64,000 bases of DNA from NCBI GenBank assembly GCA_964019335.1, contig OZ025667.1, forward strand, positions 664,273-728,272, written 5' to 3'. Numbering within the stretch: the stretch's first letter is position 1; each line of letters starts with the position of its first letter. Source of the stretch: Diplonema japonicum (taxonomy: Eukaryota; Protista; Euglenozoa: Diplonemea). The position numbers were made by a program, and so were the translations under genes. The notes beneath the pieces were generated by a model. That model was not told the DNA's origin and ran no database searches. It worked only from the letters and a program-made list of their open reading frames with translations. Below, piece by piece: positions 2,571 through 23,039 of the stretch.

Positions 2571-2667
2571 TCGTGGATTTTTGCGCTTCAAAAGACCAGT
2601 ACCTCATAGATGAAACCTGCAGCTGGTTGTAATTTATTTATTTTGAGGCGCGGAATTGGGCGTGGGA

Positions 2668-5600
2668 CATGGCGTGACAAGGCGAAGGTCAAGGAGGTAA
2701 ACCAACTCATGACCGAGTCGAAGCGCGCGGCCTGGGGTGAGATGGCGGCTGACCTCAGTCGGAGCAAGGACCTCGGGTCTGCGTTTAGGGCGGTGAAGAA
2801 GCTGGACGACACCGCAGACCGCACCTTCCCATTCTCGAGGGGAGGTTCGTGACGGACAAGGCGAAAGCCGACCGCCTGGGGGCTCACTTCGGCAAGCTCT
2901 ACGGCCAGGGTGGTGATGGGGACGCGGCGGACGTAGCTCCTTCGACGAACGTGCTTGGGTGCCACGCCTTTACGGTGTATGATCTCACCCGCGGTCTGGG
3001 AAGGATGAAGACACGCAGTGCAGCGGGTGATGATGGCATCTTCGCGGAGATGCTTCTCCACCTCGACTAGCCCTCGCTCGGGGTTCTACTTCTGCTCCTC
3101 AATCGCTCATGGCAGGCGGGGATTGTGCCGGGTGCCTGGAAGAAGGGGGTGATTGTTCCAGTGGCGAAGGCAGGGAAGGACGCCACGTTGCTTGCATCGT
3201 ACCGTCCCATATGTCTCACTAGCTGTCTTTGTAAGCTGCTTGAGAGGATGATAGAGGAGAGGCTTACCTTTCTCCTAGACTCTAGCGCGTCGGGCGTTGA
3301 GAGTCTCCACGACAGCCAGGCTGGCTTCAGGAGGGGCCGCTCCACGGAGGAGCAGGTGGCGTCCCTGACCGGGTGCCTGTCGAGGAACAAAGACAGTCGG
3401 CGTCTGTCGGCTGCCCTGCTGTTTGACTTCTCATCTGCGTTTGACCTGGTTCAGCACGAAGCTCTCTTGGGCATGATGCGGAGGAAAGGGATCCCTGAGC
3501 CCTTCGTCGAATGGACGCGCTCCTTCCTCTGCGGTCGTACGGCGGCGGTCACGGTGGGTCGTTCGCGAGGGTCGACGACGAAGGTGAGGAGAGGGGTGCC
3601 CCAAGGGTCTGTGCTGGGACCCGTCCTTTACACCATCTACGTCGACGAGCTAGCCAGGTTGCTGGTTGGGATGGCGGACCTGTCGGTTCTTTATGCCGAC
3701 GATGTTGCGGTGGTGGTCTCAGCCGGGCAGGGCGACCTGGCTGGTCTTGAGCGAGGGGCCCAGGCTGTGATGGACGCGGTTGAGGGCTGGTGTGGGAGAC
3801 GGGGCATGCTGCTGAGCTCCAGCAAGTCGCAGGCAGTGTGCGTTCCCTATCAGAAGCGGCTTAATGTCTACTTCTCTTCGTCGCGTGTCCCGCTTTGCCC
3901 GGGGGCCTTCCAGGACCCTGTCCTTAATCTTGGGGTTGGGGTCTGTGGGACCTTGTCTGGCGTCCGTGAGCTGTCTGGCTTTCGGGTCGTGGAGGCGGGT
4001 GGCAAACGGTCCTTCGACATTCCCGCCGCCATCCGGAGGTCCGACATTGGTTACATGGCGGCTCGCCCCTTGCCTCTATGTGGGTCGGCGAAGTATCTTG
4101 GGGTCACTGTAGACTCTGGGCTCACGTTTGACGAGCATGCGGGGGATGTCCTGAGGAGCGCTGACAAGAGGCTGAGGGTACTAAGGCTCCTGTCGGGCAC
4201 GACCTGGGGGTGCAAGAAGGCCACGCTCCGATCTCTGTACCTCACGTACGTTCTCCCGCTACTCCGGTACTGCATGGGTGTTTACTTTGCCAGGCTCAGG
4301 GACAGCAGGGTGGAGGAGCTTGTTGGGCTCCACCAGAGAGCGGCGGTGCTGATCTCGGGTTGTTGGCACGGCTCGGGCACGGCGAAGGTTGTTGCTGAGG
4401 CAGGTCTGCTACCCCTCCGACAGATGGCTGAGGGAGCTGCGGCGGTGTTGACGGCGAAGTCGTTCTGCTGGAGGACCTCCCCGGTTCACCGCGAGGTCCT
4501 TGAGCAGAAGCGGATGACCGGTATGGGCAATGGGTGGCTGCGTGCGGGTATCCTTGCGCTACGACGCTGCGGACTGCAGGGGTGGACGACGCAGGAAGGC
4601 TTCAGGAAGTACGACACCTTCGAGCTACTGACTGCCTCGCCCAAAGTAGCACCGTGGCATGCGATCCTGGTGGAGTTCAGAACTGCCCTTCCCGGCAGGG
4701 TCACGCGTTCGTCGCCGGACGTGGATAAGCGGAAGGCGGCCGTGGAGGCTCTGGCTGCCCTTCCACCGGGTATCCATGCCTATACGGATGGTTCTGTCGT
4801 ACGGGACCGCCAGAGGTGGAGGGGCGGCGCCGGGGTCTACTTGCAGCTCCCCCGCCCCCACGAACCCGTGTCCGAGAGCTTCGGCGTCAGCAATTTCTGC
4901 TCTTCCTTTCGGGCGGAGGGTCTGGCTGTCAAGGTGGCTCTGGACATGGTGGCCGCGCTCCGGAGCGAGCACCCCACGTTGGCAGACAGCCGGCTGTCGA
5001 TCTGTACCGACTCGCTCTCTCTCCTTGATCAGCTGAGGGCAGGTCCTTCGCGGCAGAGGGAGAGGCTCGACCACGAGACCTGGGAACTGCTGGTGGCCGC
5101 GGCACGTGCACAAGGTGCACCAGTCATTCTCCAGTTTGTGCCGTCCCACTGCGGGGTTCCTGGCAACGAGGCGGCAGACAGGCTGGCCGGGGAGGGCACG
5201 AAGCGCGAGCTGACTCGCCCCTCTCTCGACTACAGGTCGGTCAGGGCCCTGGTCCGTCGCCAGATTCAGCAGAGGTCTGCGGTCATTGTCGGGGAGGTGG
5301 CCCCGAGATACGCGAGGGCCACGGGGCTCCGAGCGGCGTGCTTCCCCCAGTCCCTCCCCAGGCTAGCGGAGACGGTCATCTCGCGGCTGAGGGTAGGGCA
5401 CTCCGCTCTCTTCTTCGGCTTCCTGCAGGCGGCTGGACCGAACAGGAAGAAGGCTGAGCTCAGCTGTCCAGCGTGTGGAGCACAGATGTCCAGGGAGCAC
5501 GTTGTTGGGGGGTGCGCTGTGGTTGGACGGGGTTCGCTCGACGCTCCCAATGGACGCCCCTCGCTGGTGGAGTGCCTGTCAAAACGCGTGACGCAGGTAT

Positions 5601-6478
5601 TCACCCTCATCGCCGACTCTGGCTTGCTTGACTGGGCCAGATCCGGGGTCTTCACGTCGCCGTCTGCGGCAACGGCAGGTACCGCTGCCCCTTCGTTCAT
5701 CCCGCCGGCTGTCTCCCTTGACGCCGGCCCTGCGGCCCCCGTGTTGCGCTGAAGTGAGTAGGGTGAGATCAACATTTCAATTCTTTTAGTGCTTACGTTC
5801 CCTTCCCCTCTCTTCCACTCCCTCTCATCCTTTTCTTTATCATCATCCGGCGTCTGGCCTTTCTCTTACCAGTATGCCCGTCCCCTTTTAAACTTTTAAA
5901 TTTTTAAAATTAACATCCTCTTGTTATCGTGTGCCCTGACATTGTAGTCAAAAACGGATGGCCCGGCCTACTCTGAAGTTGCCCAGATGAGTCCTCTCAT
6001 CTTCGCACGAACGAGTGTGGTACGGCCATCCCCTCCCCCCGCCTGCCGGAGTGCAGCGGGGAGAGCAAATACTTCCCCTATCATCCCCATGCGCACACGC
6101 ACACTCGCTTCCCCTTTTGATTTTGAGAGATTTTACTCTCACCCTTTCATGTTTCGCTCAATGGAGCAAATCCCTCTCGAGGGGGCGACCGGGGCCAGTT
6201 CCGGTCACCAGAGGTCCCAGTTGAGAAAAACGACGAACTGGGGTCAAGGTCCCCGTCCGAGTCACGTAGGTCTACGCGGCTTGGAATTAAAGTAATTCAG
6301 CCCTCTTCGGCTGTTCCAAACAGGTGCACGGGTTGGCGGAGTCCACAGCTCCATCTGATTGCAGAAGAACTGGTCTTCGCCCTCCCTGTAATATTTCCAT
6401 GCTTCCCTTCACCTTTCCCCTTCCCAGGTGTTGCTCCCCCATGGTGGCACCTATTGGTATTTTGAAGAAAAAAAAAAA
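2668..6478 (+). mobile_element. Non-LTR retrotransposon family A copy 1 (ingi/I-group; 5'-truncated, defective)
   Basis: RT (YRPICLTS, QAGFR, GVPQGSVLGP, YADD, KYLG), RNase H (YTDGS, TDS, VPSHCGVPGNE.AD), CxxC..H...C; ~720-nt 3' UTR and poly(A); target copies at 2654-2667 and 6477-6485; frameshift near 2850 and TAG at 3068-3070. Confidence 0.93.
3125..5752 (+). pseudogene. RT-RNase H reading frame of family A copy 1 (no APE domain, upstream stop)
   Basis: 875-aa ORF with RT and RNase H motifs, cut off from upstream sequence by an in-frame TAG. Confidence 0.85.
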
Positions 6479-6485
6479 TTGGGCG

Positions 6486-6522
6486 CCAACGATTCTAAAG
6501 CTACAGTTTCTGTACTTTATTG
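6486..6522 (+). other. Retro-integrated spliced-leader (mini-exon) sequence
   Basis: CCAACGATTCTAAAGCTACAGTTTCTGTACTTTATTG has the conserved euglenozoan SL 3' end CAGTTTCTGTACTTTATTG and a diplonemid-type 5' part. It is followed by GGAAGG, not by a GT donor, so it is not an SL RNA gene. Confidence 0.92.
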
Positions 6523-6556
6523 GGAAGGCTTAAAAAAAAAAAAAAAAAAAAAAAAA

Positions 6557-7777
6557 ATGTCAAGTGACAAAATGACGAAGCCGAGCAAGGCGGGCGCCTC
6601 CAAGGGGCCCCTACCGGACGGGAGCGAGCCCGACCAAGACCCGCCGCAGCTAGTGCTGCAAACCACCGAGGTGGTGATCAGAAAGACCCCCCCCGAGACG
6701 ACCCCCAAGACGAAGCCCACCCGGAAGCACTACGACGCAGTCGTAGCCCCGCTTGCCCCCAAGCCCACGTGGGCGGCCTTCATTGCGCAGGCTGGACTGG
6801 GGAAGTCGATGAGGTTCGACGGTGTCCTAGGCACCATCGTAACCACAGGGACTCCCCCTCTTCAGTCCTACTCAGTGAGGGACGGAGACACTACCCATAA
6901 GGTGGTGTTCGAGGAGCAGAAGGGATCCTTTAAAAGGAAACTACCGGGTGGGTCTCGTAGAGGGACCAAAATAGACTTCCGCAGGGAGTTCGGGGGGGCG
7001 AGCTGGTCGCAGGTGTGGGAGCTGGCCGACGAGAAGGAGGGGAGGAAGAAGAAGGCGAGAGAGGAGAAGGGGGCCAAAGCCGCAAAAAGGAAGGCCGAGG
7101 CCAGGGAAAGAGAGGAGAAGCTGGAGGCGAGGATCCAGGCGCTGGAGAGCGCCGAGAAGGAAGAGGGAGGCGGGATGGAGGACGACTGGGGCTGGAGGGA
7201 AGCCATGGACAGGCGGATTGCCGAGTTGGAGCAGGCGAGGGAACAGGCCGGGCTGTGGGAGAAGGCGTGCGAGAGGAAGGTGGAAGAGGTGGAGATGAGA
7301 AGGGTGCGTACGGACGAGAGGACTGAGGAGCTGAACAGGAGGGTGGGCCTGGTGGAGGGCGAGCTTGGTGGCCTGAGGGGGGAGATTTCTTCCTTGAAGG
7401 CGTCATCGGAGAGGACGGAGCGGTCGGTGGAGGAGCTGAAGCAAGGGATGAACAGATTACTCATCCACTTGACTACAGGAGCCCCCCCACCAGGAACCTC
7501 CGAGGAGGCAGACGGGTCCCCAGAACAGAGGGGACACGTGCCGTCCACCGATGGCGCTGACGAGGGGACTGACACCCCAGACTGCCCCAGGCACGCTGCG
7601 ACACCGGAGAGAAAGGGTACCGTAGCACCTTTATGCTACGACACCCCCCCACCAGCCGAAAGGCTCGTAGGAGTTGCCACAACAAGGCAGACAACCCTAC
7701 ACACCACCCCCTCGCAGACAACGCCCCTGCACAAGGTGAACCCTCCCGTAAAAAGGAAGGTTGAAGGCCAGTACTAA
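6557..7777 (+). CDS. Retrotransposon B ORF1 (coiled-coil protein)
   Basis: ATG at 6557 after a 34-nt post-SL, A-rich UTR; long E/K/R heptad coiled coil; lies upstream of ORF2. Confidence 0.8.
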   Translation: MSSDKMTKPSKAGASKGPLPDGSEPDQDPPQLVLQTTEVVIRKTPPETTPKTKPTRKHYDAVVAPLAPKPTWAAFIAQAGLGKSMRFDGVLGTIVTTGTPPLQSYSVRDGDTTHKVVFEEQKGSFKRKLPGGSRRGTKIDFRREFGGASWSQVWELADEKEGRKKKAREEKGAKAAKRKAEAREREEKLEARIQALESAEKEEGGGMEDDWGWREAMDRRIAELEQAREQAGLWEKACERKVEEVEMRRVRTDERTEELNRRVGLVEGELGGLRGEISSLKASSERTERSVEELKQGMNRLLIHLTTGAPPPGTSEEADGSPEQRGHVPSTDGADEGTDTPDCPRHAATPERKGTVAPLCYDTPPPAERLVGVATTRQTTLHTTPSQTTPLHKVNPPVKRKVEGQY

Positions 7778-10700
7778 GGGCCGTGCAATCTCATTCAACA
7801 CCCCTTTCACCCCCTTTCCCACACCGTCTCTCACTCCCTGTCCCTACTCCCAAACCCCCAACACTACACCCCATCTAAACGAAGATGAAGTACTACCCAG
7901 CCTCTCAAGCCCTGGAAGCTGGGGTGACCGCAAAGGCAGCACATCATCACCACATCACCATCCCTCATCTTTCCCTCTCTCCACGCACAATTCCTCCCCA
8001 AACAAGCACTCACAAACTCCCGTCACCGGTGACGAAGTATTACCCAGTATCCAAAGGCCTGGACCTAGGGGTGACCACACAGGCAATCTTCACATTCGCA
8101 GAAATCCCGCAGCCAGCGGTCCGCACGGAAAACACTTACTGAGCTGCGGGGACATAGAAGCGAACCCCGGTCCAACCACCGAAAAGACAACAAGAGTTGA
8201 ACACTCTCTCCCTCCCGTCCCCTCTACTTCCTCTCTCTCACAGGCACACTCCAACACAGCACCACCACCCAACAACATCAACGTACTGTCTCTCAATGTC
8301 AGATCCCTAACGGTGAGCACCACAGCGCAGCTGCTGAAGGGCATTGAGACACACAACATCGACGTGCTCCTACTCCAAGAGACTTTCCTGAGGCCGTCGA
8401 AAGATATAACCGGAGTCTTCACTGGGTTCAAGGCATACCGCCGAGACCGAACACGACCGGTGAAAAGAGGAAAGCAAATCAGCGGAGGGGGTCTCGTCAC
8501 ACTGGTCAGAGAATCGATACCGTCGAAACAGATCGAAGTTCTTCAGAAACCCAGCGACGTGACGGAAAGACTCGACGTAGAGATCTCGCTGCCCAACCGG
8601 AAGCCGTACAGACTCGTCAACCTGTACCTGCCTCCGACAACGGGTAGAGACGGCGACGACAGACCACCCCCCGAGAAATATTTCCGCCCGGCAGAGCTGC
8701 CTCATGACAGTTACACCATCATCGCCGGTGACATGAACGCCCACCACACGATGTGGGACAAAAGGGGCACTCCGAATAAGCTGGGAGAAATACTGCACAG
8801 CTGGATGCTGCGATGGGGCTACAGCACATGGAACAAGAGCAGCGAAGCCACGATCCTGAACCCGTCAGGAAACCCAACCTCTCCGGACATGGTAATGAGC
8901 GGCGCAGAGTTCGACAAATCTTCTTGGAGGACGTTGCCAGCAATGGGCTCAGACCACGTTCCGATGTTCTTCAGTCTGAGAGGGGGAGTCAGCCAACCGA
9001 CCAGAAGAGTACTCTACTCTTGGGGGAAGGAGGCAAGGAGCGCGTACAGGGAGACGATGGAAGAAAAGTGCAGCAGGCTGCTCAGGGCCAGAGACCCGAT
9101 AAGGCTAAACGCTGAGTTTCGCACACTTCTTCTATCGGCAACCGAATCGTGCGTCCCCAGGAAAGGACAGAAGAAAGGGAAGGTTTGGTGGAACGACGAG
9201 ATTGACGCACTCGCAAGGCGACGAAGCACACTGAAGGCGAAGCTGTTGTCCGAGGATCACGACGGGAACGACGAAGACCTGGCACGTCTAGCGGCGATGG
9301 AGGCTGAGCTGGACAGGGCGATAACGAGCGGGAAGCAGGCTGCCTGGGGCGACTACACCAAGAAGTTGTCCAAGGACGGAAACCTGACGCAAGCCTTCTC
9401 GGTCATCCGCAGATTCGACGGTCGCAGCGAGAAGCCACCAATAGCCCCGCTCCGACGAGGAAACGGTATCGCCACCACCGACAGGGAGAAGGCCAGTGTA
9501 CTCGTCGAACACTACGCGAGGGCCTGCTCCCCAAGGACGACTGCCAAGTCGGAGGAAGTGATCACCACCATCAAGAAGGACGCGAAGCCCGGGACAGACA
9601 ACGACTTCCCCCTGGTAACGAAGGACGAGCTGGACTCGGTGCTGCGAAGGCTGAAGAAGGGCAAGGCTCCGGGCCCAGACGGCATCTACAACGAAATGCT
9701 GAAGTACCTGGGACCGGTGGCCAGGGAAGTTCAACTCCTCCTCTACAACTCATCCCTCCAGACCGGTGTCGTCCCTGCCGAATGGAGGCGGTCTTCCATC
9801 ATCCCCCTCATGAAAAAGGGCAAAGACCAATCCGAACCCGCCTCGTACAGGCCGATCGCGCTGACGTCAAACATCGTGAAGACGTTGGAGCGAATAGTCA
9901 AGGACAGGATGTGCTTCCTGCAGGACACAGGACGGGTAAGGCAATTGCACACATCGCAGGCGGGTTTCCGGAAAGGGAGGTCCACGGAGGAAAACGTGCT
10001 GTACGCCGCCTCAAAGCTCAAAAGTGTCAGACTGAGCCAAGGTCTGGGGGGTCTCCTGCTGTTCGACTTCAAAGGAGCCTTCGACACAGTCTGGCACAAG
10101 GGAGTGATCGCAAAGCTGATAGGCGACGGATACCCTCCCAAGCTCGTGAAATGGATCACCTCTTTCCTCGACCAACGTAAAGCCTCCGTCTGTGTGAACG
10201 GGGAACACGGCTGCGTGAAGACAATGACAGGGGGCGTACCCCAAGGCACCATCCTGGCCCCGCAGCTCTTTTCCATCTACGTCAACGACCTGGCCAGGTT
10301 GTACAGGAAGGCTGGAATCGACGCGGTAGTGTACGCAGACGACATAGCGATAGTGCTGGAGGCGGGGAGTCCTGCCGAGCTGAACAAGAAGGTGCAACGC
10401 GCGGTGAGCCTCACGGAGCGATGGTGCGAGACGTTCTCGATGAAACTGTCCCAGGAAAAGACAGAGTTCATGCCGGTGGAGGGACAGTTCTGGAACTCGC
10501 ACGACAGTCTCGCAAACCTCATCAACGCCCGCTTCCCCTCGAGTGGGGCGAAAGTCAAGGTGGTACGCGAGGCTAAATATCTTGGCGTCACCTTCGACGA
10601 AAGCATGAACTTCCACGAGCATGTGCAGAAGGTGAAGGGAAAGATCAACAGCCGTCTTCGCCTGCTGCGCAAACTCGCCGGAACAAGGTGGGGCTGCCGC

Positions 10701-12086
10701 AAGCACACCCTAAGGACGCTGTACCTGACGTACGTCCAACCGGTTCTGCGCTACTGTCTCGGTGCTTACGGCAACTTCGTGGGACATGCTGCTCTGGCCG
10801 AGTTCGACTCGCTACAATACACAGCAGCGAGGTTGATAACGGGATGCTTCGACAAGACTTCCGCGACGGTGACCAGGTCAGAGGCGGGCATCTGGGAGAT
10901 TGAATCCTTGCTGGAACACGACACCCTGGTGCTCTACGAGAAGGCACAGCGTCAACCGGGGACGACAGCGGAGAAGGCAACAAAGATATCCGGGGGTCAG
11001 ATGTGGTACGGGAAAAGCTGGCGAAACACCGCGCTCGACTTGGCGAAGAGTCACGGGATGCCGGAACGCGAAGACCTACCACACCACTCAGTCACTCAGA
11101 GCGCAGACCTGCAGCTCCCTCCATGGGTCCAACCCAAAGTCCTGTTCCACCCCGACCTAGTCCGCAAGGTACACAAGAAGGACGAAAAAAGTCTCAAACT
11201 CCGAGCGGCCTTCGAATCGATCAGGAGGCACGGCATCCCAGATGTGATCGTCTACACCGACGGGTCAGTCACCGGACACAGGAACGGCGGTTCGGCAGCT
11301 GTGATAAGGATCGGGTCTGACACACCGAAGCAGGCTCGCAAGAGCGGAGGAGCAGTGACTTCGGCCTACCGATGCGAACTGAAAGCGCTGAACCTGGGGC
11401 TGCAATGGACACTGTACCATACCCGGAGACAAGGTGTGACGACCGGAGTAGTGCTGCTGTGCTCGGACTCCCAGTCGGTGATCAGAAGACTGATGCAGGG
11501 CCACAGAGAGATGAGGCAGAAGGAGGAACTGCTGGCTTGGAAATGGCTGGACGCGCTTGACCGCCAAGGCCTCTCCACCATCATCCAGTACGTTCCCGGA
11601 CACTGCGGCCTACCAGGTAACGAGCAAGCCGACCGACACGCCAAACGCGCCGCAAAGGAGTCGACACCGGACGGACCGACGGACCTGATGACCACAAAGA
11701 GCCTCATCAAGAGGTCGGTGAACCGCGACTGGGCAGCCTCGTGGGAGAAGACGGGTCGGGACAAGAAGTACCGAGAGGAGATCGGCGCGAGGTACCTCCC
11801 CTTGAAGGAACTGTCCTGCAGACACGATGAGGTACAGATAACGAGACTGCGAACGGGCAGGAGCCACCTGACTTGCGGTTTCCTGTCGAAACCCGTCCAG
11901 AATGACTTACGTTGCCTCTCGTGCCATTCGATCCAGGACAGACACCATCTGCTGATCGGGTGCCCAGCTGGAGACAAGGTCCGCGAAGAGATCTTCGGGG
12001 ATGACATCCCCACGACCACGAAGGAGATGCTCACAATGAGGGTGAGTGAAACCGCCTCCTACCTGAAGAGGATGGACCTCATCTGA
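7761..12086 (+). CDS. Retrotransposon B ORF2: 2A-like peptide, APE endonuclease, RT, RNase H, C-terminal Cys/His motif
   Basis: GDIEANPGP; LNVRSL/LLQET/GDMNAH/SDH (APE); YADD RT; YTDGS/SDS/VPGHCGLPGNE.AD RNase H; CLSC..H...C. Uninterrupted 1441 codons; true start unclear because the first ATG is at 8733. Confidence 0.92.
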   Translation: MKASTKGRAISFNTPFTPFPTPSLTPCPYSQTPNTTPHLNEDEVLPSLSSPGSWGDRKGSTSSPHHHPSSFPLSTHNSSPNKHSQTPVTGDEVLPSIQRPGPRGDHTGNLHIRRNPAASGPHGKHLLSCGDIEANPGPTTEKTTRVEHSLPPVPSTSSLSQAHSNTAPPPNNINVLSLNVRSLTVSTTAQLLKGIETHNIDVLLLQETFLRPSKDITGVFTGFKAYRRDRTRPVKRGKQISGGGLVTLVRESIPSKQIEVLQKPSDVTERLDVEISLPNRKPYRLVNLYLPPTTGRDGDDRPPPEKYFRPAELPHDSYTIIAGDMNAHHTMWDKRGTPNKLGEILHSWMLRWGYSTWNKSSEATILNPSGNPTSPDMVMSGAEFDKSSWRTLPAMGSDHVPMFFSLRGGVSQPTRRVLYSWGKEARSAYRETMEEKCSRLLRARDPIRLNAEFRTLLLSATESCVPRKGQKKGKVWWNDEIDALARRRSTLKAKLLSEDHDGNDEDLARLAAMEAELDRAITSGKQAAWGDYTKKLSKDGNLTQAFSVIRRFDGRSEKPPIAPLRRGNGIATTDREKASVLVEHYARACSPRTTAKSEEVITTIKKDAKPGTDNDFPLVTKDELDSVLRRLKKGKAPGPDGIYNEMLKYLGPVAREVQLLLYNSSLQTGVVPAEWRRSSIIPLMKKGKDQSEPASYRPIALTSNIVKTLERIVKDRMCFLQDTGRVRQLHTSQAGFRKGRSTEENVLYAASKLKSVRLSQGLGGLLLFDFKGAFDTVWHKGVIAKLIGDGYPPKLVKWITSFLDQRKASVCVNGEHGCVKTMTGGVPQGTILAPQLFSIYVNDLARLYRKAGIDAVVYADDIAIVLEAGSPAELNKKVQRAVSLTERWCETFSMKLSQEKTEFMPVEGQFWNSHDSLANLINARFPSSGAKVKVVREAKYLGVTFDESMNFHEHVQKVKGKINSRLRLLRKLAGTRWGCRKHTLRTLYLTYVQPVLRYCLGAYGNFVGHAALAEFDSLQYTAARLITGCFDKTSATVTRSEAGIWEIESLLEHDTLVLYEKAQRQPGTTAEKATKISGGQMWYGKSWRNTALDLAKSHGMPEREDLPHHSVTQSADLQLPPWVQPKVLFHPDLVRKVHKKDEKSLKLRAAFESIRRHGIPDVIVYTDGSVTGHRNGGSAAVIRIGSDTPKQARKSGGAVTSAYRCELKALNLGLQWTLYHTRRQGVTTGVVLLCSDSQSVIRRLMQGHREMRQKEELLAWKWLDALDRQGLSTIIQYVPGHCGLPGNEQADRHAKRAAKESTPDGPTDLMTTKSLIKRSVNRDWAASWEKTGRDKKYREEIGARYLPLKELSCRHDEVQITRLRTGRSHLTCGFLSKPVQNDLRCLSCHSIQDRHHLLIGCPAGDKVREEIFGDDIPTTTKEMLTMRVSETASYLKRMDLI

Positions 12087-12131
12087 GACTCTCACGACCG
12101 CCGAGCCGCTGACCGCAATCGCAGGACGTAG

Positions 12132-12170
<39 letters not shown>

Positions 12171-12902: not shown

Positions 12903-12913
12903 TTGGGCGTGTA

Positions 12914-12995: not shown

Positions 12996-13036
12996 GTTTT
13001 TTTTTCTTCTGTTTTTTCTTTCTTCCACTTCTGCAG

Positions 13037-13129
13037 GATTTGAAACGACATGGTGTTCAATCGCTTGTTCGCGTCTGTGCTCCGACATACAAGGAAGAAG
13101 TCGTGCGGAATCATGGCATTGAGGTTTAT
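13037..13129 (+). CDS. PTP4A: PRL/PTP4A phosphatase, exon 2
   Basis: CTGCAG acceptor ends at 13036; DLKRHGVQSLVRVCAPTYKEEVVRNHGIEVY contains the PRL VRVC..TY motif; GTATGT donor at 13130; phase 0 on both sides. Confidence 0.9.
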
Positions 13130-13210
13130 GTATGTACCGAGTTGTTTAGCTTTGTTTCCATTTATTATTTTGTGCATGGATTTTAAAGAAAGGCTCGATT
13201 GAAATAATGT

Positions 13211-16200
13211 GAAATAATACGCACACACGCGCCAAGCAATTGTAAAGGACAACGCCGCCGCCAGGGCGAAGCGCACGCGCGAGGAGGTGGAGAGGAAGCG
13301 CGCAGAGGGGGTCACGCCGGTGGTGACACCCTCCCCCGGGCAGGGGAAGAAGGCGGCCAGAAGGGCCAGACAGAAGGCAGCAGCTGCTGACGCTGCCACC
13401 GCCGCCGCTTCGGGCTCCGACGACTCTGTCGTCTTAATTAGCGAGTCGCCGGGCGTTGCCACCTCGTTCACGGTCGACACGCCAGAGGTCAGGAGGGCGA
13501 GGATGAGGACTGCTGCCGCCGACACCACTGCTCCTGCACCTGCTGCTGCCAACACCACTGCTCCTGCACCTGCTGCTGCCGACACCACTGCTCCTGCACC
13601 TGCTGCTGCCGACTCCCCTGCTCCTGCGCCTGCTCCAGCCTCTACTGCAGCCGTGTGGTCTACTGCCGTCCTCACTGCCGCTGCCTGCGACACCGCCCTC
13701 CCCATGTCGGACTCTGACACCGACGAGAAGAACACGGCCCCCGCTCCCGCACCGGCCCCGGAGCCTCACTGGGATCTGGTCCCCGACACGTGGGACGCCC
13801 CCATCTACACCAACACTGCTCCCCCTGAGGAGGTGCCCCGCGCCGTCGTCGCTCTCGACGACCTCCAGCAGGTGGACGCGATTCGCACTGCGAGGCCCAC
13901 GGCCTCCCTGACCTTCGTCCTCTTGACGGAGGTTGCCGGTTCGACCACCCCATGCACCGTCATCGTACTCGCCGGCCAGCGTGCCGTGCACAAGGCCGTG
14001 CACACCTTCTCGGTCGGGTCGAACCCCCCCTCCTACACCCCACTCGCTTCTTTTGATGGCGGCTCTGAGGTAGTGTACGTCAGCGTGAAAGCTGACAGCG
14101 TGAACGCGGCGAAGGCCAGGGTTCGGGACCTCGTCGCGACCCAGGGCGTGGCGGTGGAGGAGCAGGCGATCTTCCGCCCGAAGAAGATCGACGGGAACGA
14201 GCCGCGGGCGCGGCACTGGAGCCACGAGGTGGGCCTCGGGCGACGGCTGCATGGTCAGGACGACCGAGCGGCGCGGGGGGTACACCTACGTGCCCATCGT
14301 AGCGGAGGGGAGGGCGGAGGCCTTCCAGCTGGCGAAGGCACTGGGCGGGTTGTCCCTGGGGGTGGCCCATCGCAAGGGTTGGACCGTGAGGTGCCTGCCG
14401 GAGACGGAGCAGCGTCTGAGGGAGGCCCTCGCCAAGCAGAGGACAAAGCGTCGGTACCTGCTCACCGGAGCCCCGCTATCTGTTACCAGGGCAGCCTTCG
14501 ACGGGATGATGGACCACATCGGTTGGAAGCCGTCGTCCATCAATCCGTGGTCATCTCCACCGAGCTCGGTTGCCCCTCCGCCACTTGGCACCGTGACTCC
14601 GGTCTCCTCTGCGGCTTCCCCGACCACGACACCTCCCCGTGACTCCCAGAAGAAGAATCCCGCACCGGAACCTGAGGTCCCGGCGCTCCTCGCGCTGATC
14701 CAGTCGATGCAGGCGACCATCGACGGTCTGCAGGCGACGGTCCGCGACCTCCAGGAGAAGATGGCAGCGTCACTTGGCGCGCCGGCGCCATCTGCAGACG
14801 GTGCTGGGCGGACGGCAGTTGCTGGGAAGGGCAAAGGCGGCAAGGCAGGGTCCAAGGCAGGGACGAAGGGGCACCAGGCGCAGGGCGTAAGCACGCCAGG
14901 CCCCTACCCGACATCGACGGAGCAAGGGGGCGGAAGGGGACGCGCCCAGTCGCTGGCTGGCGACTCTGCTACCCCCAACGGGGTCGGCCGTGGACGGGCA
15001 GCCTCTGTGGGTCCGGCCCCCGCCCCTGCCAATTGAAGGGGACCCGCTGAGCAGGGGGGGCGGCAGATCGACGACCACGCCCCCTCTCCTGGTCTCCCGC
15101 GCATACAGCCGAGGAGACACCTTCCACATCACTTGTACGACGTCCTCCCTTCCTTGATCCCTTCCTTACTTGAACGGATGTCGGCCAGGGACCTGCTGGG
15201 GCTGCTTGGGCTGGTTGAGACGAACCCCGGTCCACCTAAGAAGCTCCCACCCCCGAAGCCGAAGGGACTCAGGGTCCTGTCCTGGAACTGCAACGGTCTT
15301 GCCGCCAAGTGGTCAACCGTGTCCTACCACGCTGTCCTACTGACGCTGGATATCATTATGATCCAGGAGACACACCTTAGGGAGGGGCATGAGACACCAT
15401 ACCTGCCTGGATACACGTCCTACAGGAGGGACCGCACAACACCGGTGACGGACGGCTCTGCGACGAGAGGCGGTGGTGTCATCACGTATGTCCGTGACTG
15501 CCTTGCCTCGGAGGAAGCTCCTTTCGTACTCCCTGAAGGTGACAGTGTCACTGAGCGATTAGACGTGAGGATCTCCTGTGTGAAGCGCGTCCCGGTCACC
15601 CTCTCCAACGTGTACCTCACGCCTGTGAGTATAAGCAGAGGAACAAGGGACCCCGAGTACCTACGGCCGGGCAGCCTACCTGTGGGGAAGAACACGATCG
15701 TTGCTGGCGACTTCAACGCACACCACAGCTCTTGGGATGCCAACCGACGAGCCGACGCGGGACTCACCGCCACGCGTTCTGGACCTGGTGGTGGGACGTT
15801 GTGCGGAACTGGAGCCGAGGACGTTGGGGACGTGGGGCTCTGATCACAGCCCGGTTTCCTTCCACTTGCCGCTTGAGGACGCCTACTGCTCGGAGCGCCC
15901 CTGCCCTACCTGGAACTTCAAAAAGGCCAGGTGGGACGACTTCTCCGCGGCCGCTGCCGCCCTTCTGACCAAGATCGACACGAAGGGTCACATTGACTCC
16001 TTCACGAAGGAGGTAACAGAGGCTCTTCTGCATGCAGCTGACGACCACATTCCGCTTTGCGGAGTGCGACGAGGCCCGACCCCCTGGTGGACGGCCGAAC
16101 TCGAAGACGCTTTCGAAGAACGGAACGCCCTGCGGGATCGCTTCCTCAAGTCGGCTGAGACAGAGGATGACAGCGTAGCGGCGGTGTACAAGGCGAAGGT

Positions 16201-19200
16201 CAAAGAGGTGAATCAACTCTTGACCGAGTCGAAGCGCGCGGCCTGGGGTGAGATGGCGGCTGACCTCAGTCGGAGCAAGGACCTCGGGTCTGCGTTTAGG
16301 GCGGTGAAGAAGCTGGACGACACCGCAGACCGCACCTTCCCATTCTCGAGGGGAGGTTCGTGACGGACAAGGCGAAAGCCGACCGCCTGGGGGCTCACTT
16401 CGGCAAGCTCTACGGCCAGGGTGGTGATGGGGACGCGGCGGACGTAGCTCCTTCGACGAACGTGCTTGGGTGCCACGCCTTTACGGTGTATGATCTCACC
16501 CGCGGTCTGGGAAGGATGAAGACACGCAGTGCAGCGGGTGATGATGGCATCTTCGCGGAGATGCTTCTCCACCTCGACTAGCCCTCGCTCGGGGTTCTAC
16601 TTCTGCTCCTCAATCGCTCATGGCAGGCGGGGATTGTGCCGGGTGCCTGGAAGAAGGGGGTGATTGTTCCAGTGGCGAAGGCAGGGAAGGACGCCACGTT
16701 GCTTGCATCGTACCGTCCCATATGTCTCACTAGCTGTCTTTGTAAGCTGCTTGAGAGGATGATAGAGGAGAGGCTTACCTTTCTCCTAGACTCTAGCGCG
16801 TCGGGCGTTGAGGGTCTCCACGATAGCCAGGCTGGCTTCAGGAGGGGCCGCTCCACGGAGGAGCAGGTGGCGTCCCTGACCGGGTGTCTGTCGAGGAACA
16901 AAGACAGTCGGCGTCTGTCGGCTGCCCTGCTGTTTGACTTCTCATCTGCGTTTGACCTGGTTCAGCACGAAGCTCTCCTGGGCATGATGCGGAGGAAGGG
17001 GATCCCTGAGCCCTTCGTCGAATGGACGCGCTCCTTCCTCTGCGGTCGTACGGCGGCGGTCACGGTGGGTCGTTCGCGAGGGTCGACGACGAAGGTGAGG
17101 AGAGGGGTGCCCCAAGGGTCTGTGCTGGGACCCGTCCTTTACACCATCTACGTCGACGAGCTAGCCAGGTTGCTGGTTGGGATGGCGGACCTGTCGGTTC
17201 TTTATGCCGACGATGTTGCGGTGGTGGTCTCAGCCGGGCAGGGCGACCTGGCTGGTCTTGAGCGAGGGGCCCAGGCTGTGATGGACGCGGTTGAGGGCTG
17301 GTGTGGGAGACGGGGCATGCTGCTGAGCTCCAGCAAGTCGCAGGCAGTGTGCGTTCCCTATCAAAAGCGGCTTAAAGTCTACTTCTCTTCGTCGCGTGTC
17401 CCGCTTTGCCCGGGGGCCTTCCAGGACCCTGTCCTTAACCTTGGGGTTGGGGCCTGTGGGACCTTGTCTGGCGTCCGTGAGCTGTCTGGCTTTCGGGTCG
17501 TGGAGGCGGGTGGCAAACGGTCCTTCGACATTCCCGCTGCCATCCGGAGGTCCGACATTGGTTACATGGCGGCTCGCCCCCTACCTCTGTGTGGGTCGGC
17601 GAAGTATCTTGGGGTCACTGTAGACTCTGGGCTCACGTTTGACGAGCATGCGGGGGATGTCCTGAAGCGCGCTGACAAGAGGCTGAGGGTTCTAAGGCTC
17701 CTGTCGGGCACGGCCTGGGGGTGCAAGAAGGCCACGCTCCGATCTCTGTACCTCCGTACGTTCTCCCGCTACTCCGGTACTGCATGGGTGTTTACTTTGC
17801 CAGGCTCAGGGACAGCAGGGTGGAGGAGCTTGTCGGGCTCCACCAGAGAGCGGCGGTGCTGATCTCGGGTTGTTGGCACGGCTCGGGCACGGCGAAGGTT
17901 GTTGCTGAGGCAGGACTGCTACCCCTCCGACAGATGGCTGAGGGAGCTGCGGCGGTGTTGACGGCGAAGTCGTTCTGCTGGAGGACCTCCCCGGTTCACC
18001 GCGAGGTCCTTGAGCAGAAGCGGATGACCGGTATGGGCAATGGGTGGCTGCGTGCGGGTATCCTTGCGCTACGGCGCTGCGGACTGCAGGGATGGACGAC
18101 GCAGGAAGGCTTCAGGAAGTACGACACCTTCGAGCTACTCACTGCCTCGCCCAAAGTAGCACCGTGGCATGCGATCCTGGTGGAGTTCAGAACTGCCCTT
18201 CCCGGCAGGGTCACGCGTTCGTCGCCGGACGTGGATAAGCGGAAGGCGGCCGTGGAGGCTCTGGCTGCCCTTCCACCGGGTATCCATGCCTATACGGATG
18301 GTTCTGTCGTACGGGACCGCCAGAGGTGGAGGGGCGGTGCCGGGGTCTACTTGCAGCTCCCCCGCCCCCACGAACCCGTGTCCGAGAGCTTCGGCGTCAG
18401 CAATTTCTGCTCTTCCTTTCGGGCGGAGGGTCTGGCTGTCAAGGTGGCTCTGGACATGGTGGCTGCGCTCCGGAGCGAGCACCCCACGTTGGCAGACAGC
18501 CGGCTGTCGATCTGTACCGACTCGCTCTCTCTCCTTGATCAGCTGAGGGCAGGTCCTTCGCGGCAGAGGGAGAAGCTCGACCACGAGACCTGGGAACTGC
18601 TGCTGGCCGCGGCACGTGCGCAAGGTGCACCAGTCATTCTCCAGTTTGTGCCGTCCCACTGCGGGGTTCCTGGCAACGAGGCGGCAGACAGGCTGGCCGG
18701 GGGAGGCACGAAGCGCGAGCTGACTCGCCCCTCTCTCGACTACAGGTCGGTCAGGGCCCTGGTCCGTCGCCAGATTCAGCAGAGGTCTGCGGTCATTGTC
18801 GGGGAGGTGGCCCCGAGGTACGCGAGGGCCACGGGGCTCCGAGCGGCGTGCTTCCCCCAGTCCCTCCCCAGGCTAGCGGAGACGGTCATCTCGCGGCTGA
18901 GGGTAGGGCACTCGGCTCTCTTCTTTGGCTTCCTGCAGGCGGCTGGACCGAACAGGAAGAAGGCTGAGCTCAGCTGTCCAGCGTGTGGAGCACAGATGTC
19001 CAGGGAGCACGTTGTTGGGGGGTGCGCTGTGGTTGGACGGGGTTCGCTCGACGCTCCCAATGGACGCCCCTCGCTGGTGGAGTGCCTGTCAAAACGCGTG
19101 ACGCAGGTATTCACCCTTATCGCCGACTCTGGCTTGCTTGACTGGGCCAGATCCGGGGTCTTCACGTCGCCGTCTGCGGCAACAGCAGGTACCGCTGCCC

Positions 19201-20009
19201 CTTCGTTCATCCCGCCCCCGCCGGCTGTCTCCCTTGACGCCGGCCCTGCGGCCCCCGTGTTGCGCTGAAGTGAGTAGGGTGAGATCAACTTTTCAATTCT
19301 TTTAGTGCTTACGTTCCCTTCCCTTCTCTTTTCTTATGTTATCATCATCATCCGGCGTCTGGCCTTTCTCTTACCAGTATGCCCGTCCCCACTTTTAAAT
19401 TTTTAAATTTTTAAAATTAACATCCTCTTGTTGCCGTGTGCCCTGACATTGTAGTCAAAAACGGATGGCCCGACCTACTCTGAAGTTGCCCTGATGAGTC
19501 CTCTCATCTTCGCACGAACGAGTGTGGTACGGCCATCCCCTCCCCCCGCCTGCCGGAGTGCAGCGGGGAGAGCAAATACTTCCCCTATCATCCCCATGCG
19601 CACACGCACGCTCGCTTCCCCTTTTGATTTTGAGAGATTTTACTCTCACCCTTTCATGTTTCGCTCAATGGAGCAAATCCCTCTCGAGGGGGCGACCGGG
19701 GCCAGTTCCGGTCACCAGAGGTCCCAGTTGAGAAAAACTACGAACTGGGGTCAAGGTCCCCGTCCGAGTCACGTAGGTCTACGCGGCTTGGAATTAAAGT
19801 AATTCAGCCCTCTTCGGCTGTTCCAAACAGGTGCACGGGTTGGCGGAGTCCACAGCTCCATCTGATTGCAGAAGAACTGGTCTTCGCCCTCCCTGTAATA
19901 TTTCCATGCTTCCCTTCACCTTTCCCCTTCCCAGGTGTTGCTCCCCCATGGTGGCACCTATTGGTATTTTGAAAAAAAAAATTAATATTAAAAAAATATT
20001 AAAAAAAAA
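13211..20009 (+). mobile_element. Non-LTR retrotransposon family A copy 2 (near full length, defective)
   Basis: Frameshifted ORF1 (13218-15036), VETNPGP, APE (WNCNGL, IQET, GDFNAH), RT, RNase H. Nearly identical to 2677-6478 over the shared region; several frameshifts; A-rich tail followed by the target AATGTAAGCCTCTC. Confidence 0.92.
13521..13630 (+). repeat. 30-nt tandem repeat in family A ORF1 (DTTAPAPAAA)n
   Basis: GACACCACTGCTCCTGCACCTGCTGCTGCC repeated about 3.5 times. Confidence 0.85.
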
Positions 20010-20021
20010 TGTAAGCCTCTC

Positions 20022-20384
20022 CTCTCACTGTTTCCCATTTCCCCTTTTTATTTTCACACTCACCAATGATTCGCTCAATAGGAGCAATACCTCCCTGGGG
20101 GGCTTTCCGCCGGAGGTTCCAGCCAAAGAAGGACATCCAGCTGGAAGGTAGGCCCCCGTTTTTCTCTCACTTGACTGAGGGAATAATGTAATTCAGCCCT
20201 CTTCGGCTGTCCCAAAGCAGAGCACGGGTTGGTGGGGGACCAGGGCTCCTCCTGCTTGCAGAAGCCTGGTCCATTGCCCTCCCTATTTCCCCATGGTTTC
20301 CCTTCACCTTCTTTTCCCTTTTCTCAGGTGTTGCTCTCCATGGCGGCCCTGCATTGGTATTTTGAAAAAAAAAAAAAAAAAAAA
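20022..20384 (+). mobile_element. 5'-truncated 3'-UTR-only copy of a family A-related retroelement
   Basis: Shares GTAATTCAGCCCTCTTCGGCTGT...CAGGTGTTGCTC...ATTGGTATTTTG-poly(A) with the family A 3' end but is clearly diverged. Confidence 0.8.
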
Positions 20385-20386
20385 TG

Positions 20387-21844
20387 CTGTCTCTGCAGAC
20401 GAGTACAAACTGTGGCACGAGGTAGCGGAACTTGTAAAGAGAGGCCACAAAGTGGTCATACAGTACGTACCAAGTCACTGCGGATTCAAATGGAACGAGA
20501 TGGCGGACAAGAAGGCGAAGGAGACCTGCCGGGCAGTTGCCCACGAACAGAAGACCAGCATAGACATCGTGAAGTCACTGGTGAGAAAAAAGGTACTGGC
20601 GAACCACCTCCTCTTCTGGAAAAAAACGGGTGTCAAGGAGACATACCGAGAGCTTTTCGCAGGGAATTTCGAGAAGTTTGAAGAGCTAAACAGGGAACAA
20701 GAAGTTGCGATCATGAGGCTGAGAGTGGGGAAGAGCCCCCTCATGAGCGGGTATCTACTCAATCCCCCAGTCGGTGTGGTCACATGCCACCTTTCTTCGA
20801 TGCCTCAGACGCTGAGCCACCTCCTGAAAGAATGCCAGGACGATGGTAGAGCTGACCAGAGAAGTCAGATCTTCGGTTCCTCCCTTCCTTCGCTCAAGGC
20901 CCTACTGTCAACTGACGCCGGGAAAACCGTACAATTCCCGGAACAGCAGGGCCTGTTGTGACCGACCGTGGGATATAATCCCCTTTATGAATTATATTAT
21001 ATACTTTACTTATATACTTTTCTTTCAAATTATCCTGAGTTTGAAGCTGTACTGTTGTTATACGACTTCAGACAGCAATTGTTTCTAACTCAATCTCTCG
21101 ACTCTGGCTTCACTCCTATCCTTTCTTTTCACCTCCCTCCCCAGTGTCTTCCCTTATTTTCCATTACCAGGCCCCTGTCCCCCGCCCCCAGTGTTATTCA
21201 AATTTTTCACTCACCTTTCATATAGAAAGAAAAAAGAAAAGAAAAAAGAAAAAAAGAAGGACAGATGATTCAAGCTTCGGTGTACACGATCGAGCTTGAT
21301 TTGAATTCCTTTATTTTGAGAAAAAAAAAAAAAAGAAAGAAAAAAAAAAAAAAAAAAAAAAAAAGAAGAATAATAAAAAAAAAAAAAAAAAAAAAAACTG
21401 AAGAACGAAACTTAATTGAATTGAATTTATTGGCTCCCGAAAGCCCAACAAGTCCAGCAGACGGTGGAGTTTCACAGTCAGCTGGTTAATTTTTCACAAT
21501 TGAAACTCCTCCAAAGTTCTTAAAATCTGGGAGGTCGTCTCTTGTTACTAGAGGCGGCTAATGCCTCGAGACCCAGGTGCTGCCTGGTGGGTGGGATCGG
21601 TTTTATTTTATTACGAAAAGAGCGTGGTGAGGGGGTCCAAGTAATTTACAACAGGGAGCAGCGGACCAGGACCCCTCGACCAATGGCTCAGTAACAGAGA
21701 CTGCTTTTCACGAATCACTTTCAAACACCTCTCTTGGTTTGAAGTGATGTCCCTTTCCCTTTCCCTTTCCCTTGAATGGTTTTCTCTACTCCCCTTCGAT
21801 CCTCCCGCCTGGTAGTGGAATAATTATTATTATTTTTAAAAAAA
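20387..21844 (+). mobile_element. 5'-truncated retroelement family C (related to B): RNase H end, Cys/His motif, 3' UTR
   Basis: VIQYVPSHCGFKWNEMAD and IMRLRVG..LSHLLKEC; ends in (TAT)n-A immediately before tRNA-Tyr. Confidence 0.75.
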
Positions 21845-21850
21845 TGTAAG

Positions 21851-21933
21851 CCTCTCGTAGCTCAATTGGTAGAGCGCGCGACTGTAGAATATTAGCCATC
21901 GCGCGGCCGCTGGTTCGATTCCGGCCGAGAGGA
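21851..21933 (+). tRNA. tRNA-Tyr(GTA) with 10-nt intron
   Basis: CCTCTCG/CGAGAGG acceptor stem, CGCGA/TCGCG anticodon stem, CT-GTA-G then intron AATATTAGCC at 37/38, GGTTCGATTCC, T-run terminator. Confidence 0.93.
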
Positions 21934-22399
21934 TTTTTTAAAAAGGGAAAAACAACCCGATCGTCGGAATCTGCTGCAGAGGCACACATTGGAAATAATT
22001 TCTGCCCCATAGGCAACGTCGCTTTCAAATGACTATGCCATTTGGACTGTAGGCACGTTGCCCTGTGATGGACGGCGTAGAAACGCATCTGTCTTAGCGG
22101 TCTTCGGCTCCTGCACAAACTCCCCTACCCTCTTCGGAGACCACAACCTTCTTTCCCTTCTGCCCCTTCACCTCCACCTGTTTGTACTTCGTGATGACGG
22201 TGTCGGTCCCCATGATTGACGAGTCAACTGTTCAACAGCGTAATCTGCGAGGCTCTGTTCACGGATATGCGCCTTTTTTGTTTCGCTTCTTCCTCCCTGC
22301 GGCTGTATTTTTCTGTTCTTTCGTGTTGTAGTGACAGGGCAGAGATGGTCACCTTCTGAACCTTCCCCTCCCTGAGGTGTGTCGCTTGACGCCGGATAC

Positions 22400-22950
22400 A
22401 TACCCCCAGTCGAGGAGGCCCCGTGTCATCTATGTTCGCAACCCCAGACTCTAAGCCACCTCCTGAATGCCAAGACGAAAAGAAAGGAGTCAGATCTTCG
22501 GTAGCTCCCTTCCTTCCCTCAAAGTCCTCCTGTCGACCGACGCCTGTAAGACTGCTCTTGGAGCGGCAGGGATCATTGTGAAAAAACTTATAAATTATGT
22601 AGTGGAATATTTATTATTATTATTGCCAAGTAACTGTCTGGTGGGTGGGATCGGTTTGCCAAGTAACTGCCTGGTGGGTGGGATCGGTTTTATTTTATTA
22701 AGAAAAGAGCGTGGTGAGGGGGTCCAAGTAATTTACTACAGGGAGCAGCGGACCAGGACCCCTCGACCAATGGCTCAGTAACAGAGACTGCTTTTCACGA
22801 ATCACTTTCAAACACCTCTCTTGGTTTGAAGTGATGTCCCTTTCCCTTTCCCTTGAATGGTTTTCTCTACTCCCCTTCGATCCTCCCGCCTGGTAGTGGA
22901 ATATTTATTATTTGCCAAGTAATTGTGAGTAATTATTATTTTTAAAAAAA
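22400..22950 (+). mobile_element. Degenerate second family C 3' fragment
   Basis: 22400-22580 is a decayed match to 20763-20960, and ~22665-22950 matches ~21580-21844; it also ends at tRNA-Tyr. Confidence 0.7.
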
Positions 22951-22956
22951 TGTAAG

Positions 22957-23039
22957 CCTCTCGTAGCTCAATTGGTAGAGCGCGCGACTGTAGAATATTA
23001 GCCATCGCGCGGCCGCTGGTTCGATTCCGGCCGAGAGGA
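22957..23039 (+). tRNA. tRNA-Tyr(GTA) with 10-nt intron, second copy
   Basis: Identical to 21851-21933; lies 28 nt upstream of PRL exon 3. Confidence 0.93.

Follow-up and report, generated by a model that had tools for sequence, protein, structure and literature searches.

Several families of LINEs (long interspersed nuclear elements) are stacked immediately upstream of transfer RNA (tRNA) genes in a 64-kb window of the Diplonema japonicum genome, the window being the whole stretch of DNA analysed here (C20:664273-728272, within a 62.5-Mb assembly). From this arrangement, together with a survey of the assembly, we consider it probable that a clade of LINEs carrying an apurinic/apyrimidinic endonuclease (APE), a reverse transcriptase (RT) and an RNase H, and comprising the families A, A2, B, B-like, CD and G, uses target-primed reverse transcription to insert at the 5' border of genes transcribed by RNA polymerase III (Pol III), mainly those encoding tRNAs. 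The data support targeting by position and orientation and not by sequence, since the spacers between element and gene are not conserved, and several of the families target their sites alike. An insertion leaves the element on the tRNA strand, its tail 1–19 nt upstream of where the mature tRNA begins and the tRNA itself intact, and is accompanied by a target-site duplication of 9–14 nt that can reach the first 5–6 nt of the tRNA.

Stacked insertions share target-site duplications

Four tRNA genes were located in the window with ARAGORN and Rfam, all of them inside two introns of a gene for a PRL-type phosphatase (Table 1). Three inserts stand before the plus-strand tRNA-Ser gene and three before the first tRNA-Tyr gene, while the second tRNA-Tyr gene is preceded by a CD-related remnant. 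An earlier note, made from the sequence alone, had counted seven co-oriented inserts; the count needs this amendment, whereas the co-orientation holds, every insert in the window lying on the plus strand and ending, toward the tRNA gene, in a tail that is A-rich or of the form (TTA)n-A. DNA of these LINE families is confined to positions 2665–22950, with none in the other 43 kb of the window.

The sequence that precedes each targeted tRNA gene recurs at the element junctions, as had been proposed. AATTGGGCG occurs exactly four times in the 64 kb (at 2654, 6477, 12707 and 12901), always on the plus strand and only at element junctions, against an expectation of 0.76 copies; none of 100 shuffled sequences reached four. 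Upstream of tRNA-Tyr, AATGTAAGCC is found only at 20008, 21843 and 22949, that is, at 20008 and before both tRNA-Tyr genes (expectation 0.05), and the shorter remnants AATGT and AATG are visible at two further junctions. Also as claimed, family A is present at both targets, whose flanks are unrelated: its truncated and near full-length copies are 98% identical over 3.8 kb (match at 16188–19981).

The suggestion that the duplication at 20008 takes in the first six bases of the tRNA is plausible but ambiguous at that site, because the adjoining A2 element has similar sequence there (compare L080). The principle itself stands on other loci. At L025 a clear duplication includes the first 5 nt of a tRNA, and on C74 the sequence GGAATTTCGTCTCC following an A copy equals the tRNA-Asp upstream flank plus its first five bases, which supports the view that duplications may extend into the tRNA.

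Genome-wide survey of LINE 3' ends and Pol III genes

The mapping of element copies against tRNA genes had been named beforehand in the earlier note as the test that might refute position-specific targeting near the start of Pol III genes, and we carried it out from both sides. On the element side, the best-scoring BLAST matches to the last 270–390 nt of families A, B (together with a 74%-identical B-like family) and CD were collected, and the downstream flanks of 96 such 3' ends were scanned with ARAGORN. A tRNA gene on the same strand lies 1–19 nt from 37 of the 96 ends, namely 11 of 36 for family A (median 12 nt), 12 of 30 for family B, 4 of 5 for the B-like family and 10 of 25 for CD. No opposite-strand tRNA gene directly abuts a 3' end, all 37 being on the same strand. 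The abutted tRNAs represent 24 anticodon types, including that for selenocysteine (SeC), and the spacers have no motif in common. The assembly contains no more than about 1600 tRNA candidates, so that approximately 0.03% of positions would qualify by chance (20 nt upstream, right strand), compared to the 39% observed. Among the remaining 59 ends, 46 adjoin another repeat (a copy of A, B, CD or A2, whether full-length or truncated, or a LINE head that recurs), that is, they stand in a stack. The claim of targeting by position thus came through the mapping intact.

On the tRNA side, the upstream 400 nt were read for the first 60 of 63 listed genes, ranked by Rfam score alone. A LINE tail lies 1–15 nt upstream in 22–23 of these 60 (about 37%), and the tails are of seven kinds: A, A2, B, B-like, CD, a CD-like variant and family G. 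The commonest occupants are A2 tails. The other tRNA genes have unique upstream sequence, save for a few with degenerate copies further off and in the other orientation. Ten 5S rRNA genes were also inspected, and an A2 tail lies 8 nt upstream of one of them (L165); none of six U6 genes has a LINE tail upstream.

Stacks with a recurring duplication are found on other contigs as well. On C17, CGGCGGTTGTAA stands between a B copy and a full-length A element and, 6 kb onward, between an A copy and tRNA-Ile. On C51, two A copies separated by 15 kb each have GGAAATCGA behind them, and the second abuts tRNA-Gln. The C74 locus with GGAATTTCGTCTCC, described above, is a third example of the arrangement in the window. 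The copies are 96–100% identical, and because of this identity they look young and the activity of the families recent.

At L013 and L026, A tails abut a tRNA-like gene of about 90 nt (CCTGTGTGGTAGAGTGG...GGTTCGAATCCC...) that ends in a T-run. Neither ARAGORN nor Rfam recognises it, and it may be an unusual Pol III gene. The non-tRNA sequences after the tails at L005, L009, L013, L032, L056, L063, L085 and L094 gave no match to Rfam at either the gathering threshold or E <= 0.1.

The LINE families and their kinship

The window's copy of family B is full length, and both of its reading frames are uninterrupted. It comprises open reading frame (ORF) 1 at 6557–7777, ORF2 at 7761–12086 and an internal A run at 12132–12170. 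The uninterrupted ORF2 product (1441 aa) matches the Pfam families Exo_endo_phos (1.2e-12, residues 176–399), RVT_1 (1.2e-36, 687–945) and RNase_H (1.1e-14, 1161–1298), and the B 3' end has 58 candidates in the genome. Pieces of family A encode the same three domains. In its near full-length copy the frame for APE, RT and RNase H is split into several ORFs, and the first 31 nt (13211–13241) are not family sequence, other copies diverging upstream of 13242; the true 5' end of the family, (GAAAA)n GAATCATGTCGACC..., is seen in L050, L055 and L088.

Behind an A tail at L004 (C62:297085-298785, minus strand; locus positions ~1380–1510), a 24-nt unit, CGGGCGGACGCCTCCACGAGCGCG, is repeated three times with runs of A16–A17 between the units, followed by a truncated LINE ORF1. 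The repeated units may represent serial abortive insertions of tails only at one site.

The CD element had been described as two families, C and D, and proves to be one: genome hits to the C part lie constantly about 227 nt upstream of hits to the D part, judged by the coordinates of the hits at at least eight loci. The A-rich run at 21316–21400 in the CD 3' untranslated region (UTR) is therefore internal, like the A run in the B 3' UTR. In both B and CD, the long internal A run is followed by a terminal module of 440–540 nt that ends AGTGG...(TTA)n-A. This layout looks like the result of LINE read-through into the 3' end of the next element in a stack, followed by capture, and stacks may be the source of the modular 3' UTRs of these LINEs. 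Downstream, positions 22667–23045 repeat 21580–21939 (tRNA-Tyr and the last ~270 nt of CD) with 99–100% identity at a distance of about 1.1 kb, and a segmental (tandem) duplication therefore accounts for the second tRNA-Tyr gene; an older CD-related fragment stands between the two duplicated copies.

BLASTP aligns the ORF2 products of A and B over 800 residues with 32% identity; the tree alignment gives 37% for the two over 577 aligned columns. The last 189 residues of CD are 32% identical to B. A quick tree placed A and B as sisters (approximate likelihood-ratio test, aLRT, 97) within a group containing three metagenomic proteins (aLRT 98). The best relatives outside this genome are metagenomic proteins at 26–28% identity, the nearest named hit being a fungal protein at 23%. 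The elements have the features of APE-type LINEs, with the endonuclease N-terminal to the RT in ORF2, and further hallmarks of this type, namely A-rich tails, duplications of 9–14 nt and 5'-truncated copies (at 2665, 20022 and 20387). As in the LINE groups that carry RNase H (I, ingi and Tad1-like), RNase H lies downstream of the RT, and a C-terminal Cys/His motif (C1385, C1388, H1396, C1401) is invariant in alignment A1. The label 'ingi/I-group' would appear to reflect the APE-RT-RNase H architecture only.

The earlier note had held that several LINE families share the targeting. They do, but as related members of one clade, so that the trait is most simply explained by inheritance; judged from their ORF2 products, A and B belong together, and the targeting was probably inherited and not gained three times. 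Among 80 metagenomic relatives (24–30% identity) no tRNA was found downstream, a weak negative as only 11 have at least 1 kb of 3' flank, and the trait looks confined to the host's own clade. The ORF1 products of A and B have no similarity to each other, and common ORF1 domains were rejected as the cause of the targeting on this ground.

In two public runs labelled as other organisms (X10 and X12), sequence of families B and A occurs nearly without differences; these may come from this species under a different label, from close relatives, or from samples in which it is present.

A spliced leader at the 5' end of family B

One of the published spliced-leader sequences, not named as such in the text of the paper that lists it, we take to be that of Diplonema. 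The head of family B, CCAACGATTCTAAAGCTACAGTTTCTGTACTTTATTG (window 6486–6522; also L073), differs at two positions from this Diplonema-type spliced leader (PMC3795323). In full-length B elements the host spliced-leader exon, lacking its two initial bases, stands first; next come a linker that is short and variable, an A run and the ATG of ORF1. This order of parts suggests that a trans-spliced mRNA of the family B LINE serves as the template for retrotransposition. The spliced-leader exon followed by GT occurs 143 times exactly in the genome, compared to 0 for the control, on most contigs and often a few kb from the contig ends; these copies would comprise spliced-leader RNA genes and LINE heads alike. 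Some of them adjoin 5S rRNA genes (for example C15:779078 and 779430; C59:512413 and 512759), a neighbourhood described for Diplonema (PMC10161547). The leader marks the host as a diplonemid-like euglenozoan.

A chimeric retrocopy at the LINE target

The 183-nt insert closest to tRNA-Ser (12718–12900) had been interpreted as a short interspersed nuclear element (SINE). This identity was rejected: the insert is a single copy, with no second full copy in the genome, its two halves occur at different loci and it shares no 3' end with the LINE families A, A2, B and CD. Bases 1–80 match seven other loci at 94–98% identity, with two pairs 134–135 nt apart, and bases 98–170 match two loci that are different from those of the head. 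The insert contains D-arm- and T-arm-like strings, and has no ARAGORN or Rfam match and no cloverleaf; the head examined by itself belongs to no Rfam family, receives no ARAGORN call and has no cloverleaf fold. Comparison with the library of A, A2, B and CD revealed no similarity. We read the insert as a chimeric retrocopy that was synthesised by a LINE reverse transcriptase and placed at the site which the LINE itself targets.

In human retropseudogenes of the U6/L1 type, a small-RNA head is likewise joined to another RNA. The likeness consists of the small-RNA head, the polyadenylated 3' end of an RNA and the duplication, and fits template switching by a LINE RT; the difference is that the chimera described here sits at the tRNA site preferred by the LINE.

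A model for insertion and its alternatives

The proposed course of insertion is as follows. The first nick would fall in the template strand of the tRNA gene, which is complementary to the element, about 5–15 nt upstream of the mature 5' end and near the expected Pol III start, and the second nick would fall 9–14 nt further downstream, sometimes within the tRNA. The duplication rebuilds the flank, leaving the tRNA intact and the site reusable. With the target thus restored, later insertions land between the older element and the tRNA, yielding a co-oriented stack with the same duplication at each junction, in which the element closest to the tRNA is predicted to be the youngest. The cue for the site would be where the Pol III initiation machinery (TFIIIB, TFIIIC or Pol III) sits, and not the DNA sequence, because the flanks differ, the distance varies by about 15 nt, and a 5S gene, a tRNA-SeC gene and the tRNA-like gene of L013 are hit as well. 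The determinant would reside in the ORF2 protein (ORF2p) or in a common host partner, since the ORF1 products of A and B are unrelated and a foreign retrocopy lies at the same site.

Several observations weigh against this model. Thirteen of the 96 ends have neither a tRNA nor a recognised repeat beside them, and two degenerate copies lie away from tRNA genes, indicating that the specificity is not absolute. Pol III genes other than those for tRNAs are hardly used (one of ten 5S genes, none of six U6 genes), as would equally be expected if the internal promoter of tRNA genes or TFIIIC were recognised. The surveyed samples are the best-scoring BLAST and Infernal hits and not a full census, and the tail-to-tRNA distances of 1–19 nt are minimum values that may be a few nt too small, since A or T in the spacer is indistinguishable from the tail. 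Empty alleles or empty orthologous sites did not emerge, no joint that skips an insert being present in the Logan contigs of four runs. Finally, the tether to the Pol III machinery is inferred from position, orientation and analogy, and the role of TFIIIB from analogy.

A more specific version of the proposal, which we regard as rather unlikely, assigns the entire recognition step to ORF2p: the protein, common to the clade of spliced-leader-capped LINEs, would nick the template strand of the tRNA gene where Pol III starts, guided by Pol III or its open initiation bubble, without a tether between ORF1 and TFIIIB. If this were true, the AT-rich (TTA)n-A tails would stand in the place of an upstream promoter element, the tRNA gene would stay active and the site would be re-armed. 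Most insertions of these families, together with trans-mobilised cellular RNAs, would be funnelled to tRNA genes, and the process would amount to transcription-coupled target-primed reverse transcription, which to our knowledge has been described for no element.

Recognition could instead lie in the tRNA gene itself, an element protein binding its conserved 5' part (A box or D-arm DNA) and nicking slightly upstream without the Pol III machinery. Such binding would account for the strict orientation and for the fact that nearly all identified targets are tRNA or tRNA-like genes, U6 and 5S genes being used so little; yet distances of 1–19 nt within single families are loose for a nuclease anchored by sequence, and the targets include tRNA-SeC, a 5S rRNA gene and the unrecognised tRNA-like gene of L013. 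We hold this explanation to be unlikely. It is less probable still that the nick is guided by structure, the template strand being exposed in the melted Pol III initiation bubble or in an R-loop at active tRNA genes. The inferred first nick always lies in the template strand close to the expected start, A and B have no ORF1 similarity and a foreign RNA was inserted at the same place, all of which a structural cue would explain. We know of no precedent for it among retrotransposons, however, and this counts against it. In addition, the known cases, Ty3 and TRE5-A, use protein contacts with TFIIIB (PMC5911963).

The two remaining explanations we find hardly credible. Insertion could be random or AT-biased, with only the tRNA-adjacent copies surviving selection in a gene-dense genome; the flanks of tRNA genes are plausible safe sites and some copies do lie elsewhere, but selection could not yield a 20-nt window, the same strand in 37 of 37 cases and one site reused with identical duplications, and copies that are 96–100% identical are young. 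Alternatively, the pattern could be an artefact of assembly or the product of segmental duplication of a few blocks consisting of a tRNA and an element. Some flanks in the sample are in fact duplicates (L005/L006, L009/L010 and L091/L092), and tRNA-Tyr and the CD end are tandemly duplicated in the window. Against this stand the 24 anticodon types, the differing spacers and the dozens of contigs involved, as well as the junction between exon 2 and family A, which is covered (12966–13271) with zero differences by contigs of two independent studies of the same organism. The possibility that the tRNA is a part of the element, acquired by 3' transduction, was also considered and rejected: tail and duplication lie between the two, and many types of tRNA follow one family.

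The host gene and the features of the window

The host gene is assigned to the PRL-type phosphatases because of the evidence from exon 3 (Table 1); Pfam found no match in the translation of exon 1 alone. The exons were searched singly, not joined, and the GT/AG splice sites are predicted from the sequence. The assignment of the tRNA-Tyr genes as GTA derives from an identical sequence at L041 (ARAGORN, intron mode). Before the insertions, intron 1 (2489–2664 and 12914–12995) would have measured roughly 300–400 nt and contained two tRNA-Ser(CGA) genes, divergently oriented with about 95 bp between them; the stack has since enlarged the intron to 10.6 kb. For annotation this means that 10-kb introns in this genome can be short tRNA-bearing introns inflated by stacks.

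Table 1. Coordinates of the features in the window (position 1 is its first base).
Feature	Position	Strand	Evidence or remark
Host exon 1, N-terminus of PRL-type phosphatase, followed by GT donor	2338–2460	+	Read from sequence
tRNA-Ser(CGA), intron 1, divergent partner of the targeted tRNA-Ser	2489–2570	-	ARAGORN; Rfam RF00005, 58 bits
Duplication copy 1, AATTGGGCGTG, leftmost; original -13..-3 flank of tRNA-Ser(+)	2654–2664	+	
LINE family A, 5'-truncated, A tail; RT and RNase H ORF 3125–5752	2665–6476	+	Pfam RVT_1 1.6e-32, RNase_H 5.9e-9
Duplication copy 2 (AATTGGGCG)	6477–6485	+	
LINE family B, full length, 3' module ending (TTA)n-A	6486–12706	+	
Duplication copy 3, AATTGGGCGTG	12707–12717	+	
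Putative chimeric polyadenylated retrocopy: ~80-nt multicopy small-RNA-like head, unrelated ~73-nt piece, A tail	12718–12900	+	
Duplication copy 4, 2 nt ahead of tRNA-Ser	12901–12911	+	
tRNA-Ser(CGA), targeted, intact	12914–12995	+	ARAGORN, Rfam
Host exon 2, AG acceptor and GT donor	13037–13129	+	Read from sequence
AATGT, left remnant of tRNA-Tyr upstream flank	13206–13210	+	Visible; alone too short for significance
LINE family A, near full length, A/T-rich tail; ORF1 13287–14642	13211–20007	+	Pfam on ORF pieces; tblastn against B ORF2
Duplication AATGTAAG(CCTCTC): tRNA-Tyr flank -8..-1, possibly with first 6 nt of tRNA	20008–20021	+	
A2, 361-nt 5'-truncated 3' end of an A-related family, A tail	20022–20382	+	79% identical to A 3' UTR
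AATG, duplication remnant	20383–20386	+	Visible; alone too short for significance
LINE family CD, 5'-truncated; RNase H C-terminus to 20961; terminal module ending (TTA)n-A	20387–21842	+	RNase_H 1.2e-6
tRNA-Tyr(GTA) with intron, copy 1, targeted	21851–21933	+	Rfam, 58.1 bits
Older CD-related fragment and duplicated CD 3' end, before second tRNA-Tyr	22403–22948	+	
tRNA-Tyr(GTA), copy 2, sequence identical to copy 1	22957–23039	+	Rfam
Host exon 3, phosphatase active site VHCIAGLGRAP (CX5R)	23068–23391	+	Translation; Pfam DSPc 1.6e-6, Y_phosphatase 0.0024

Comparison with known systems

Within the Euglenozoa, the LINEs SLACS, CRE and CZAR insert in spliced-leader genes. They come from the same phylum, and SLACS and CRE resemble the elements described here in targeting a multicopy small-RNA gene, but these two use a restriction-like endonuclease and a fixed sequence inside the spliced-leader genes. 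The elements ingi and L1Tc, again from the same phylum, are APE-RT-RNase H LINEs that prefer a short sequence motif and are not known to target tRNA genes. A search of the available literature on tRNA genes and non-LTR (long terminal repeat) retrotransposons in Euglenozoa, kinetoplastids and diplonemids found no report of tRNA targeting; the genome paper on Diplonema papillatum describes many transposable elements in introns, with tRNA genes unmentioned as targets. In a 2018 review, a table gives tRNA-gene targeting for budding and other yeasts and for dictyostelids, with LINEs among the dictyostelids only (PMC5911963).

A copy of family B with uninterrupted reading frames, near-identical copies, and the occupation of about a third of the sampled tRNA genes alongside empty paralogues open the recognition step to comparison and assay.

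In Saccharomyces cerevisiae, Ty3 targets the whole Pol III transcriptome via TFIIIB (PMC5006619, PMC5911963). Ty3 and the Dictyostelium element DGLT-A (Ty3/gypsy) differ from the present elements in being LTR elements: they depend on an integrase, can insert in either orientation, make 5-bp duplications and have no ancestry in common with LINEs. In D. discoideum, the APE-type LINE TRE5-A selects tRNA genes according to position and not sequence, hits a 5S rRNA gene as well and integrates through target-primed reverse transcription; TFIIIB subunits are bound by its ORF1 protein, and the B box is required for targeting (PMC5911963). To this extent it resembles the elements described here, which are also of APE type, target tRNA genes by position and in one case hit a 5S gene. 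TRE5 elements, however, insert 44–54 bp upstream in the opposite orientation and have a zinc finger after the RT instead of an RNase H (PMC5911963), in contrast to the distance of 1–19 nt, the same orientation with the tail facing the tRNA and the RNase H after the RT found here, where moreover the ORF1 products of A and B are unrelated.

TRE5 had been put forward as an analogue, but a closer one, and the closest known on these grounds, is NLTR-A of D. purpureum. This element has an APE-RT-RNase H ORF2 with an overlapping ORF1 ahead of it and is found 2–6 bp upstream of the start of the mature tRNA, at tRNA genes of any type; the family numbers 28 copies, only one of them full length (PMC5006619, PMC5911963). 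The two systems are likened by ORF2 architecture and by position close upstream of the tRNA, not by sequence. NLTR-A belongs to an amoebozoan host and to one family, compared to at least six 3'-end families here with tens to more than 100 copies each, and the present system has a wider window of 1–19 nt, about 37% of the sampled tRNA genes occupied and stacks of several kb. What the Diplonema elements add is convergent, multi-family and apparently recent targeting of tRNA genes by LINEs in a new eukaryotic lineage, and not a new category of element. As such it would be another independent origin of the habit, in a third eukaryotic supergroup, and would lend weight to the idea that Pol III genes serve generally as safe harbours for mobile elements.

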